Positions 6,867 through 24,918 are shown, counted from the stretch's first letter. The stretch: 64,000 bases of DNA from Auanema rhodensis (GCA_964057225.1 OZ059894.1:9424001-9488000); one strand, 5' to 3'. Notes: generated by a model not told the origin, from the letters alone. Translations and numbers: made by a program.

Positions 6867-12129
<5,263 letters not shown>

Positions 12130-19659: not shown

Positions 19660-21012
19660 ATGCGCTCAGTTGTGATTGTCACTCTCTGTTGTTTGGTATA
19701 TACTGTCATGTCTGGAATGGTTGGTGGTTGGACTTCCCAGAATGCTTCTGATGCCGAATTCATGGTGAGATTAAATATTCATTTTTAACTGTCATGCCTA
19801 TTATCCAGTTCTCTTATCTATTTATCAGTATTTTTTTAGGATAAAGCTTGGAAAGCTGCCAAGGGTGTAAATGATGATGCTTCCAATTCTGGACCTTATC
19901 ACATGATGCCAATCAAAGTGAGTTAGCTTGATTTTCACATTACATTATAGCCACATGACGCTGCTGAAGGGTGTAGTAGAGGAAACATATTTATTGATTG
20001 AAAGCATGAGTTCTGTGTATCGTAGTAAGAGAGAAAATGTAGAAGTAAATAAGTAAGACTAAAAACAATCGATAATGGTGATGAGATCATAGGAATTGCT
20101 TGAGTTGAATATTTGGAATCTTATTGGTTAGTGTCATCTGATCAACGAGAGAAGAGTGTGAATCTCCAGATGGCATCATGATGCTGTTCGCCAATTTAGA
20201 GTTTTGTGTCACTGGGGGGACAACTGTAGTAGCAGTAATATCGTGATTCTTGATGATCAGGATGATAGTAGCTCCACCCAACATACCAGCCCATAGTACC
20301 CAGAAAAGCACAATTGCTCCATACCTGAATTGAGGGTAAAAATGTGATTAAATCTTCTGAATCTACTCACCTAATTATAAATCCTGTTCCTTTGCTACGA
20401 ATTTCTGTTAGCTCAGTCTGGGAATATCCAACGTTGAAAGGAATGTTCTCTTTAGAATCCATAAATTGCTGCCTAAGGGTAAAGAAGATGAAACTAAAAA
20501 GAAATAGAAAGCGTCTTCTTTAAATATTTCTTGATAAGACGGACTAATTTCTCCGTTTTAATCAGACCAATGTTCATACAGTTCACTTTTGCTCCGAAAT
20601 TCGATATTTACTGAAAAAAGTCAAATATCATTATTTACTGAAGATCAAATAAATTCTTAAAACTTTGCCTTTGCAGGTTCTTTCCGCTAAGTCTCAAGTT
20701 GTTGCTGGAACTCAATATGAATTTGAAATTCTATTCGGAGAATCTACTTGTAAGAAGGGAGTAAGTGGTAATGCACTTGGAATTATATAAAATCATCGTT
20801 TAAGGAAATGCAAGCCACTGAACTGTCTTCTGCAAACTGTCAGTTGAAGGATCAACCAGCTCGCCATGTAACTTATGAAATAATAGTTTTCTGTTTTACC
20901 GTTTTATACCTTTCAGATCTATAATGTTATTCTGTGGGAAAAGCCATGGGAAAACTTCCAACAATTCACTGTAAAGAAGGTCCGTAATGTTGAGCCAGCT
21001 GAACAGTTCTAA
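19660..21012 (+). CDS. Cystatin (type 2 cysteine protease inhibitor), CPI-1/CPI-2-like; cystatin A
   Basis: Five exons: signal peptide, [40 protein letters not shown]...NC, EKPWENF. Intron 2 (19918-20676) is enlarged. Confidence 0.93.
20080..20616. repeat. Direct-repeat copy 1 (~540 bp; partner at 24006-24545)
   Basis: Read-off comparison shows near identity at offset 3926. Confidence 0.95.
20087..20462 (-). CDS. Nested 109-aa single-pass membrane protein, copy 1 (in cystatin A intron 2)
   Basis: Exons 20462-20371 and 20324-20087 with a 46-nt GTGAG..TTCAG intron. [74 protein letters not shown]...KQFL*. AG acceptor 10 nt upstream of the ATG; AATAAA on the minus strand at ~19990. Confidence 0.75.
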
Positions 21013-21617
21013 CTGCTCAATAATCCGTAGATTCAACAACAATATTGAATTTCTCATTTGATATTTGTTTTTGTCGTTGATAAACCACGTCTAGAAATGT
21101 TGTAAATGTGTGTAAATCTCTTCTTCCATATATAAAATTCCCATTTTATGTAACCGAATAAACATTTTGTATATATTTTTTGTATTGTTGTAGACTTTAA
21201 ACGATGGACAGGTTTTGCTATAACCTATTCAAGTTTGATACAAACTTTAAATATCATGAATATGGAAAGCCAACCTATTTTTGAGTGAAATAATTATATT
21301 TAAACACATTTCGAACGAGAAAAAGTTTATGTATGCTATATGTTCAATATTTTATTGAAAAATTGTATTTGTTTACTCATTTTTTGTAATAATAGTAAGA
21401 TTGATATGGTTTGATTTGAAGAGAAAGTAGAAATTAGAAAGAGAAAAGTAAAATTAAAGTTTTGATGATTATAGATTCTTATCAAAAAAAGTTATTCTTT
21501 GTAAATAAACAAAGATTATTTGGAGATCAAAATCCTCTATATTAGTGAGAAATGTCATTGAGATTTTCAGTCTGTGCCGATTCACTGCGTTGAATCTTCA
21601 CTTCTTCTCTATCGAAA

Positions 21618-22135
21618 ATGAAATTATTCATCTTTGCCCTCATGGTTGCTGCCGTTGCTGGAAGTTTAGTTGGTGGATGGACTGAACAAGACGCTTCTGA
21701 TTCCAAGTACCTTGACATGGCTTGGGGAGCTAGTGGTGAGATCAATAAGGAACACAGCGGAGGAGATAAAGCTCTTGTTCCCAGAAAGGTATCACACTCC
21801 CAGTTGACCTAATAGATTTATTGTTTTTATTGTTCAGATCATTACCGCCAGATCTCAAGTTGTAGCCGGAGTTAACTATGAAGTTGAGGTTGAAATGGCT
21901 GAATCCGACTGTTCGAAGGTAATATTTGTCAATATAATTCTTCATAAAAAAGAATAATCTTCCAGAATGACGTGCCCACTGCTGACAAGTGCCATCCAGA
22001 AGATAACTCTGAAGGATACGTAAGATCTTTTCAGAAGATGAAACCTCTTATTTCTCATTTCAGGTGTACACGTTCCGTAAATTCGAACAACCCTGGACTA
22101 ATACTGAGGAATTTTCCGTCGTTAAGAAACCATAA
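21618..22135 (+). CDS. Cystatin B
   Basis: Four exons: MKLFIFALMVAAVAGSLVGGW...PRK/IITARSQVVAGVNYEVEVEMAESDCSK/NDVPTADKC.../VYTFRKFEQPWTNTEEFSVVKKP*. Confidence 0.92.
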
Positions 22136-23659
22136 TTCACCTGAATTATATTTGTTTTTAACTATTTCATTTCTTAATAAATATTCCCAATATTAAAAAA
22201 ATTGTAAATAAAACAAAAGAAGTTGACAAAAGAAAAAACAAATTCTGATCTAATGTTTGAATCTTCTTGTGTACCTAGGCGTAAGTCTAGCAAAACACGA
22301 AACAAGTTTTTTTAAATCCACAAATTAACTTTTCCGTCTGTCCGTTCGTTCGTTCCATTCAAATTTTATTTTTATTTTCTAATGTTATGGACAACACAAG
22401 CTTGTTGTTTGTTTTTAATATCTAGATAGTACCAGTAAATTTCAGATTTTATTGAAAAGAAAATGAACAGATGATTTCATACAGAAATAACAATTTTATT
22501 TCAAAAATATAAATAAATTTATGAACTTTGTTGTAAAAGAACAAAGAAATTTGGTAATTTTCGAATAGAATTCATTAACATCTGGACAGATAACATAACA
22601 GTTCGTTCTCAGTTCATCGTGAATGGTTGTAAAATTGGTTGTAACTTTTCTTGTACAACGTGTTACATGACTAATTTGTCAGATCACAAAGATTAATTTC
22701 AAGTTTTTCATTTAACCAAGTTTGTTTTTGATCAAAATTGTTTTTAAAAAACTTTTTATGTATCTATGACGTCCGAAAGTATGGCACAGCTAATTGAACT
22801 AAATATCGTTTCGAATAATTGGTCTATAGAATCAATCGGGCAAACACGCAAGTTATGCCATGATCAAGTAAAGTTCAGTTCAGTTCATAGAACAGATGGT
22901 AAATAACTAGAAATATTGAAACAAAACTATGAGGAAGGATAATCACTTCACAGCAGAGGAATAACCTGCTGTGTAAGTAAGCTACTTTCCTATGCGTTTA
23001 ATACGTTAACTATACAAAAGCACTGGATGTCCATTAACAGTGAAGCACAGAAGATTCGAACTCATGATTCTTAACAATGATTTCTTGAAATCCTATCAAT
23101 AAACTAAAATTTTCAGAAGAGTATTACTAAAGATTAAGAAAAGAATTACATATCATCACCAGTACTAGAAAGAAAGAAAATACCTCTGTGATAAACTTGT
23201 AAAGTTATGTCATCACAATAATCTTCACTGGTTATCTGATCATAGTTAGTGTATGATACTAATGTTATTACTATTTCATTGGTTTCAAACTAGTAACGAG
23301 TTTGTATACCAGGAACTAACACGTTGTGAAAGAAATCTAAACATAAACATTATTTTTGTGTTTAAACTATCTAATATGTAACAGGAATATATATTTTCAA
23401 ATCAATTTAAGTTCAATTTAAGTTTATTATCAGCATTTTGGTTGAAAAGGATTTTTTTTTTAAATTCATAAGTACATTGGACTAATTATGGGCGGAGATT
23501 TTAAAATTCTGGTAATAACATAGTCTGGTATGAAAAAATGCTTAGGCTATATGCTGTCATTTGAATTCAAATAATTAATTCTCTGAAAAATTATTATCAA
23601 TCTTATCGTTTTATTTTAATTTTAAAATTTTCATTGTTCACAGGTTAATAAACTACAAA

Positions 23660-24918
23660 ATGAAATTATTTATACAATTTATGGTCTTAATCAATTTCAT
23701 GATAAATGTGAATGCTGATTGGCCTATTACAAGTTTTGGTAGCCCATCACGTATGAATATCTCAAATCCTTTAATTATGGTAAAGCAATAAGATTCATAT
23801 TACAGCATATTTGTAGAAATATTTAAAGAAAATAGCATGGAAAGCAGCAATGAAAGTGAATCAAGAAGATCAAAATAATACTTACAGCTTGATACCTTTC
23901 AAAGTAAGTTTGACTCTATTTCCTCAGAATATTTATTGATTAAAGAGTTGAAGCTTGATATTCCCGTAACAGTTGGAAAGAGAAATAGAAATGAATAATC
24001 ATTATGATGAGATCATAGGAATTGCTTGAGTTGAATATTTGGAATCTTATTGGTTAGTGTCATCTGATCAACGAGAGAAGAGTGTGAATCTCCAGATGGC
24101 ATCATGATGCTGTTCGCCAATTTAGAGTTTTGTGTCACTGGGGGGACAACTGTAGTAGCAGTAATATCGTGATTCTTGATGATCAGGATGATAGTAGCTC
24201 CACCCAACATACCAGCCCATAGTACCCAGAAAAGCACAATTGCTCCATACCTGAATTGAGGGTAAAAATGTGATTAAAGCTTCTGAATCTACTCACCTAA
24301 TTATAAATCCTGTTCCTTTGCTACGAATTTCTGTTAGCTCAGTCTGGGAATATCCAACATCGAAATGAATTCTCTCTTTATAATCCATGACAAGAGGTCT
24401 AAGGGTAAAGAAGATGAAACTAAAAAGAAATAGAAAACGTCTTCTTTAAATATTTCTTGATAAGGCCCACTAATTTCTCCGTTTTAATCAGACCAATGTT
24501 CATACAGATCACTATTGTACTTCCAAAATTCAATATTTACTGAAATAAAACGAACAGTTAGATCATTCAGAATTATCATTTTCTTGCAGGTACTCGATGC
24601 GTATTTTCAAGTAATTGCTGGTTCTCTGATTAAGCTTCAGGTCTTATATGGGAAATCAAACTGTTTGAAAACAGTATGGCTGTTTACGATCACATTCTTC
24701 ATAATAAATAAATTTCAGGAAGTTGATACTCTAGAAAGGTTATTCCTCTGCTCCCCAAACATTGAAACAGATCGTCAAGTCGGTATAATATTATCCGTTT
24801 GCAGCTAGACATTTTTTTATAGATTTACAATGTGACAGCAATCGAGCAAACTTGGAACAACTTTCAATCGATAAGAGTCTTCAAAATCCGAGACGTATCC
24901 ATTTCTGAAATATTATAA
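23660..24918 (+). CDS. Divergent cystatin C
   Basis: Five exons with the same intron positions as cystatin A: MKLFIQFMVLINFMINVNA.../KIAWKAAMKVNQEDQNNTYSLIPFK/VLDAYFQVIAG...SNCLKT/...LCSP.../IYNVTAIEQTWNNF...SEIL*. Intron 2 is 23904-24589. Confidence 0.85.
24006..24545. repeat. Direct-repeat copy 2 (partner at 20080-20616)
   Basis: Near identity to 20080-20616. Confidence 0.95.
24013..24388 (-). CDS. Nested 109-aa single-pass membrane protein, copy 2 (in cystatin C intron 2)
   Basis: Exons 24388-24297 and 24250-24013. [18 protein letters not shown]..., otherwise identical to copy 1. AATAAA on the minus strand at ~23932. Confidence 0.75.

Follow-up and report, generated by a model that had tools for sequence, protein, structure and literature searches.

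Near-identical antisense genes in the same intron of two highly diverged cystatin genes of Auanema rhodensis

A 64,000-nucleotide (nt) stretch of the Auanema rhodensis genome (GCA_964057225.1 OZ059894.1:9424001-9488000), referred to here as the window, holds three neighbouring genes, cystatins A, B and C, which by their signal-peptide-like starts and motifs are predicted to form a tandem array of secreted cystatins. Intron 2 of cystatin A and intron 2 of cystatin C each contain, on the opposite strand, a copy of the same two-exon gene (the passenger), which encodes an R01B10.3-like protein of 109 amino acids. The two passengers are nearly identical over their core, whereas the two hosts are very different proteins. 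We consider that host and passenger were probably duplicated together long ago and that the passengers were homogenised afterwards by repeated interlocus gene conversion (probability about 0.78). The features on which this argument draws are listed below. Positions are counted from the first nucleotide of the window, and the RNA data are unstranded contigs from four runs (X1-X4) of one 2019 study. HMM, hidden Markov model; UTR, untranslated region.

19918-20676, plus strand: host intron 2 of cystatin A, 759 nt, carrying passenger A (GT..AG; RNA junction 19917/20677 in all four runs)
20087-20462, minus strand: passenger A, R01B10.3-like SLC3A2_N mini-protein, 109 amino acids (gene model, translation, spliced RNA, family HMM)
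20462-20371, 20370-20325 and 20324-20087, minus strand: exon 1 (92 nt), intron (46 nt, GT..AG) and exon 2 (238 nt with stop) of passenger A
23904-24589, plus strand: host intron 2 of cystatin C, 686 nt, carrying passenger C (RNA junction 23903/24590)
24013-24388, minus strand: passenger C, 109 amino acids (gene model; spliced RNA in X3 and X4; family HMM)
24297-24388, 24251-24296 and 24013-24250, minus strand: exon 1, intron and exon 2 of passenger C, at the copy A coordinates plus 3926
20079-20432, minus strand: core, putative conversion tract, of copy A, pairing with 24005-24358 in copy C (353 of 354 nt identical, 99.7%)
20473-20619, minus strand: promoter and 5'UTR block of passenger A, 93% identical to 24399-24548
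24399-24548, minus strand: promoter and 5'UTR block of passenger C
19990-19995, minus strand: poly(A) signal AATAAA of passenger A, in the conserved context TTYAATCAATAAA
23932-23937, minus strand: poly(A) signal AATAAA of passenger C, in the same conserved context

Mosaic identity of the two passengers

With a GC content of 33.7% the window is AT-rich, and its introns are short, as is typical of nematodes. The passengers appear in it as a direct repeat (20072-20371 versus 23998-24297, 99% identity over 300 nt) and as a blastn block (20079-20619 and 24005-24548) which is 95% identical. No third passenger copy was found in the 64-kb window by blastn or tblastn. The original prediction for this DNA, made from the sequence alone, had placed the same minus-strand two-exon gene for a 109-amino-acid protein with a single transmembrane segment in intron 2 of both A and C, and gene models together with spliced RNA bear this out. 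It had also described exon 2 (238 nt) as identical and the 46-nt inner intron as one base apart; both statements hold, the single difference lying at 20353. Exon 1 of the two copies differs at six positions, which change four amino acids (residues 3, 6, 8 and 10, all within residues 3-10).

Identity between the copies is mosaic. The core begins 8 nt beyond the stop codon, takes in the inner intron and reaches codon 11, and the longest identical run is 274 nt (permutation test, p<1e-5). Next to the core lies a diverged patch (20433-20472 versus 24359-24398) that is about 67% identical, with 13 differences in 40 nt, or 73% identical over the 48 columns 20431-20478. The patch comprises the first ten codons and the 10 nt of 5'UTR just before them, and all four of its changed codons alter the amino acid. 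About 150 bp upstream of the gene had been predicted to be nearly identical. A similar block does exist there, but it is only 93% identical and is split from the core by the diverged patch, which the prediction had missed. Among about 113 near-neutral sites of the core there is one difference, and a common age of core and promoter block at 6-7% divergence is unlikely (Poisson P about 0.01). The core and the promoter block therefore represent at least two time layers.

On the 3' side, the sequence between the stop codon and the poly(A) signal aligns no better than shuffled sequence (z 0.3), while TTYAATCAATAAA is kept, in agreement with the earlier statement that the 3' flanks had diverged except around AATAAA. 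This poly(A) context is common to copy A, copy C and Auanema sp. JU1783, and the remaining 3'UTR is at random level. The sequences flanking hosts A and C on either side are likewise at shuffle level (z -1.8 to 0.3), and the short introns of the hosts are marginally above shuffles (z ~2, up to 2.1). The region upstream of cystatin A can still be aligned with that of JU1783 (z 10.8). The hosts had been called very different on account of their motifs (QVVAG/PW versus QVIAG/TW), and they indeed share about 35% protein identity with saturated synonymous sites (proportion of synonymous differences, pS, 0.74-0.76). When the introns were aligned and hosts compared with passengers, as had been proposed, pS was 0.76 for the hosts and 0.013 for the passengers. 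Between cystatin A and its JU1783 orthologue pS is 0.64, and between the window passenger and the JU1783 passenger it is 0.74. At the protein level passengers A and C are 96% identical to each other versus 51% to the JU1783 passenger, which is present in one copy. A renewed search around the passenger copies found no terminal inverted repeats or target-site duplications, as stated before.

Both passengers are transcribed and spliced. Their RNA junction reads CT..AC on the plus strand, equivalent to GT..AG on the minus strand, and the spliced RNA is therefore minus-strand. The junction of passenger A was found at 20322/20369 in run X2, in a contig of depth 139 that covers 20017-20322 and 20369-20456. 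That of passenger C was found at 24248/24295 in runs X3 and X4; the X3 contig covers 23877-24248 and 24295-24419 at a depth of 113. The check proposed for the 20325-20370 junction thus recovered spliced contigs with minus-strand splice signals for both copies. Since these contigs carry copy-specific flanks and come from different RNA runs, they show without recourse to the genome assembly that both copies exist and are expressed. A chimeric contig in X1 joins exon 2 of copy C to exon 1 of copy A, which is the expected output of a de Bruijn assembler across identical sequence.

Nesting in clade V nematodes and origin of the two copies

Genomic look-ups found a member of the passenger family antisense within a cystatin gene in C. 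elegans, C. briggsae, N. americanus and Auanema sp. JU1783, and partial loci of H. placei, C. oncophora and A. ceylanicum are consistent with nesting. The suggested inspection of cpi introns in relatives thus yielded the same gene in the same intron and in antisense orientation in four species, together with three partial loci. In C. elegans, R01B10.3 lies in intron 2 of cpi-2 (R01B10.1) on chromosome V, adjoining the Per1 and JAMP genes. The passenger of the remodelled hosts is always in the intron after PIK and before V..QVVAG; in the window, PIK (A) or PFK (C) comes before the passenger-bearing intron and the QxVxG exon after it. In C. elegans as in the window, the last intron of the passenger interrupts an Arg codon immediately ahead of the membrane helix, and its phase is the same.

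The window and the JU1783 locus are in synteny: PROPPIN and cathepsin F are found on the same side in both, and nucleotide identity is 67% over 2.9 kb. The JU1783 locus contains three cystatins, of which cys1 is the orthologue of cystatin A, with 74% identity and an identical exon structure (identity of cystatin A is 69% with the Necator cystatin and 60% with C. elegans cpi-2). The single JU1783 passenger is in cys1, and the other two cystatins have introns of 58 nt (cys2) and 42 nt at this site. In the window, the intron of cystatin B at the homologous site measures 49 nt, as had been predicted and as its model and RNA junctions confirm. The same nesting in Caenorhabditis, Necator and JU1783 means that the host-passenger pair predates the duplication seen here, and because the pair is ancestral to cpi-2-type cystatins, a duplicate of the host carries the passenger by default. 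Kept from Caenorhabditis through strongylid parasites to Auanema, the cpi-2/R01B10.3 pair is an unusually old host-guest arrangement.

A history of the following kind would account for these data. An ancestral cpi-2-type cystatin would already have carried the antisense two-exon gene in the intron before its QxVxG exon. Tandem duplication would have copied host and passenger together and given rise to cystatins A and C, and cystatin B would have lost its passenger or never had one. The hosts, their small introns, the flanks and the passenger 3'UTRs would then have diverged to saturation. The passengers, separated by 3.9 kb, oriented alike and under constraint in their coding sequence, would have retained enough identity for continued non-allelic conversion. 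The last conversion tract would correspond to the 354-nt core, and an older event would have left the promoter block at 93%. An old duplication with converted passengers and diverging hosts was also the favoured view of the original prediction. It is now supported by the ancestral nesting, the saturated hosts, the low passenger pS and the 3'UTR of copy C. The last has diverged as a 3'UTR of its own yet has the family poly(A) context, and the passenger was therefore in the C intron long before the last homogenisation.

Gene conversion of this kind is documented in Caenorhabditis, where tracts include short introns and same-orientation paralogues 1-8 kb apart are favoured (PMC3966223). The open reading frame (ORF) and intron of col-12 and col-13 are 99.5% identical and their flanks have diverged (PMC3966223). 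The window resembles col-12/col-13 and the hsp-16 modules in that the copies are a few kb apart in the same orientation, with tracts of a few hundred bp (PMC3966223). Unlike in col-12/col-13, the units apparently converted in the window are nested genes, and the diverged 'flanks' are host exons on the opposite strand. The mechanism is already known and current understanding is not overturned; the new points are descriptive, namely concerted evolution confined to a nested gene, the nesting of cystatin and heavy-chain stub genes in clade V, and the hypothesis of a transporter partner (see below). On this reading, the locus would be a clean natural case of concerted evolution confined to a nested gene while the host paralogues diverge freely. 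Conversion could then act on a small constrained island in saturated surroundings, and the identity between paralogues would badly misdate such a duplication.

Several observations weigh against co-duplication followed by conversion. The protein tree does not place cystatin C, and in approximately unbiased (AU) tests neither the grouping (A,C) (p 0.36) nor the grouping (C, JU1783 cys2) (p 0.43) is rejected. These tests are uninformative and neutral sites are saturated between paralogues as well as between species, so that the A/C duplication is not datable relative to the JU1783 split. JU1783 has only one passenger, in the A orthologue, and if its cys2 and cystatin C are orthologues, a passenger was lost or gained in one lineage. 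The 40-nt patch, diverged by about one third and lying between homogenised blocks, needs two tracts or a local complex mutation. Within the patch, the 5'UTR of copy C (ACCTCTTGTC) resembles that of JU1783 (AACTCTTTTC) and that of copy A (GGCAGCAATTT) does not, so copy C is here nearer to JU1783 than copy A is.

Some of these points would also fit a secondary acquisition, in which a once short-introned cystatin C later received its passenger from A, for example by conversion or repair anchored in the flanking exons, with conversion continuing afterwards. The restriction of the JU1783 passenger to the A orthologue agrees with it, as do the small extent of the C intron outside the homologous block (only about 100 + 41 nt) and a tree that does not resolve cystatin C. 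However, the entire cpi-2 lineage descends from an ancestor with the nested pair, so inheritance is more parsimonious, and the flanking host exons are without trace of co-conversion. A 3'UTR at random level with the family poly(A) context kept would make the acquisition itself ancient, and later conversion would still be needed for the 99.7% core. We regard this history as unlikely.

A further possibility is that the whole unit was duplicated recently, host C then diverged or decayed very fast, and purifying selection held the passenger. Cystatin C has a very long branch in the protein tree (2.23 substitutions per site) and is weakly expressed (depth 5-14), which would fit. But selection on a protein could not have preserved a 46-nt intron and every synonymous site without change, nor could it at the same time have randomised the synonymous sites of C, its small introns, the flanks and the passenger 3'UTR. 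Moreover, cystatin C retains an intact ORF with QxVxG and Trp, and three of its four introns are correctly spliced in RNA. A recent duplication is thus very unlikely.

An RNA-level function of the core, as an antisense regulator of host pre-mRNA or a source of small RNA, could in principle have preserved its nucleotides. The passenger is antisense to the host pre-mRNA, and passenger C, to judge from contigs, may be read through over host exons 1-2. Against this, the JU1783 orthologue has about 50% protein identity and saturated synonymous sites; there is therefore no long-term constraint at the nucleotide level, and we hold this explanation to be extremely improbable. A mobile or homing-like cassette, which the original prediction had ranked as less likely, or an assembly artefact is extremely unlikely as well: two near-identical copies within 4 kb and the chimeric X1 contig could point that way, but terminal inverted repeats, target-site duplications and a third copy in 64 kb are absent, the same intron position is fixed in at least seven other species, and copy-specific transcripts occur in separate RNA runs.

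The passenger protein and its likeness to the CD98 heavy chain

The original prediction did not recognise the passenger protein, and this statement is now superseded. A word-based homologue search with passenger exon 2 gave no matches. A Pfam scan of exon 2 alone gave SLC3A2_N (PF16028) at 21.6 bits (E 1.8e-4; gathering score 27), over the membrane helix only. Exhaustive phmmer with exon 2 led to short nematode proteins, including one of Auanema sp. JU1783 (E 4e-10), and an orphan-protein reading was dropped once this family had been revealed. Profile searches assembled a family of 84-104-amino-acid proteins annotated as SLC3A2_N domain-containing, with members in five Caenorhabditis species, ten strongylid species and Auanema sp. 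JU1783. The C. elegans member is R01B10.3 (NP_504566.1, UniProt O61974), an uncharacterised protein. Orthologues score 34-46 bits on Pfam SLC3A2_N, above the gathering score. With a family HMM built from nine orthologues and without the window proteins, passenger A scored 62.6 bits (E 1.6e-21) and passenger C 62.3 bits. By the phmmer, profile and HMM scores the passenger is identified as an orthologue of C. elegans R01B10.3. No paper mentioning R01B10.3 was found in a literature search, and a search on cpi-2 as a nested gene returned nothing relevant.

The window passengers and C. elegans R01B10.3 have in common the protein family, the type of host gene, the host intron (after PIK), the antisense orientation, and the position and phase of the last passenger intron. 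The genes of Caenorhabditis and the strongylids differ by an additional coding exon at the 5' end and by a Thr-rich tail that is short (84-104 amino acids in all), whereas the window and JU1783 passengers start at the equivalent of the second exon and have a 50-amino-acid tail. Two passenger copies evolving in concert were seen in the window genome only. The public model of the JU1783 passenger (85 amino acids; locus L001, 9322-10705) is without the real exon 1 (9931-10022), and a homology-guided model gives 110 amino acids. The nearest Atlas cluster, a weak lead only (score 0.77), consists of 59 arthropod proteins of about 132 amino acids annotated as SLC3A2_N domain-containing.

The passenger protein has one hydrophobic stretch (residues 37-55) with basic residues N-terminal to it, and it is predicted to be a single-pass, N-in membrane protein. 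Its 109 residues include no cysteine, and the tail is Ser/Thr-rich. AlphaFold2 on passenger exon 2 gave one confident helix, with a predicted local distance difference test (pLDDT) score of about 85, and a tail below 50 that is predicted to be disordered.

In the CD98/4F2 heavy chain, the SLC3A2_N domain makes up the cytoplasmic stub and the membrane helix. The family profile matched human 4F2hc/CD98hc structures (e.g. PDB 6IRS, 6JMQ, 7B00) without gaps at E 3e-8, over the cytoplasmic juxtamembrane segment and TM1'. Residues were mapped to CD98hc by chaining two gap-free HMM alignments. M45, L46, A49 and I52 of the window protein are identical to CD98hc Met196, Leu197, Ala200 and Ile203, which are the TM1' residues that pack on TM4 of LAT1 in cryo-electron microscopy (bioRxiv 10.1101/577551). 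CD98hc Phe189, Trp190 and Trp193 are also retained. In contrast, CD98hc Cys210, which forms the disulfide to the light chain, corresponds to Asp59, and with no cysteine in the passenger a disulfide to a light chain is not possible. Human CD98hc has about 630 amino acids versus 109 in the window protein, which ends 54 residues beyond the membrane helix and has no glucosidase-like ectodomain. The passenger is therefore best classed, from its predicted sequence, as a heavy-chain stub; lacking both the ectodomain and the neck cysteine, it falls outside the definition of SLC3 heavy chains (CD98hc, rBAT and ATGP). Ectodomain-less heavy-chain stubs may also occur outside nematodes.

The stub may work like the membrane helix of a heavy chain, and its conserved residues suggest that it may pair with SLC7 light chains. 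A wider and rather doubtful proposal is that cystatin and stub form a host-guest unit maintained by selection in clade V. The stub would pair non-covalently with SLC7-type (AAT) light chains through TM1'-TM4 contacts, as an escort or as a competitor of ATGP, and nesting together with a GATA promoter would couple the expression of the two genes. If true, inhibition of lysosomal cysteine proteases would be linked to amino-acid transport, and conversion in the window would preserve a doubled dose. That R01B10.3-type proteins keep the LAT1-contacting residues of the heavy-chain helix offers a testable idea for an uncharacterised, conserved nematode microprotein.

Host cystatins, promoter block and host transcription

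19660-21012, plus strand: cystatin A, cpi-2 orthologue, 141 amino acids, QVVAG/PW (splice-consistent ORF model; four of four junctions in RNA)
19660-19764, 19840-19917, 20677-20760, 20805-20867 and 20917-21012, plus strand: exons of cystatin A
21618-22135, plus strand: cystatin B, 125 amino acids, four exons, no passenger (model, RNA junctions, Pfam)
23660-24918, plus strand: cystatin C, divergent paralogue, 144 amino acids, QVIAG/TW (model; three of four junctions in RNA)
23660-23779, 23829-23903, 24590-24673, 24719-24778 and 24823-24918, plus strand: exons of cystatin C
20519-20526, minus strand: TATA-like TATTTAAA, copy A
20533-20538 (copy A) and 24459-24464 (copy C), minus strand: GATA site, CTTATC on the passenger strand
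20551-20565, minus strand: motif CTGATTA.AAACGGAG, copy A

The promoter blocks contain sites that are shared more widely. The AACGGAG motif (CTGATTA.AAACGGAG) is common to the window and Auanema sp. JU1783. In five loci, namely both window copies, JU1783, C. elegans and C. briggsae, the ATG is preceded at 76-93 nt by the GATA site CTTATC, the distance in the two Caenorhabditis species being 91-93 nt. This hints at a putative GATA-driven, possibly intestinal promoter inside the host intron.

Pfam Cystatin (PF00031, gathering score 22.2) was matched by exon 3 of cystatin A at 26.8 bits and by exon 2 of cystatin B at 30.6 bits. Exon 3 of cystatin C alone had no Pfam match, while full-length C scored 97.6 bits (E 3e-32) with a local cystatin HMM built from eight nematode cystatins without cystatin C. 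Cystatins A and B have QVVAG and PW and a GG near the N-terminus; in cystatin C the motifs are QVIAG and TW, and the N-terminal GG is replaced. Cystatin B is the orthologue of JU1783 cys3 (tree support 98/97). Over 21618-21788 it is without the first intron that is present in JU1783 cys3, cystatin A and cystatin C, which on comparison of the gene models is an intron loss in the window lineage.

RNA contigs reproduced all modelled host junctions except that of cystatin C intron 1, including the weak GTCGGT donor of cystatin C intron 4. The junctions found for cystatin C were 23903/24590, 24673/24719 and 24778/24823. No spliced junction for intron 1 (23780-23828) was present among the RNA contigs, and this boundary rests on the ORF model. 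Cystatins A and B reached depths in the thousands in X1 and X3 and were 10- to 100-fold lower in X2 and X4. The depths of passenger-specific contigs do not track those of the hosts. Contigs of X1 and X4 with the passenger C splice run on unspliced past AATAAA (23567-24248), through the start of host intron 2, exon 2, intron 1 and exon 1 of cystatin C. These contigs point to a 3' extension of passenger C, read through antisense to the 5' exons of its host, although they are unstranded and host pre-mRNA is possible too. Public models of the JU1783 cystatin (152 amino acids) and the Necator cystatin (122 amino acids; locus L006, 6367-10104) use non-homologous splice sites; remodelled, these proteins have 141 and 143 amino acids, respectively.

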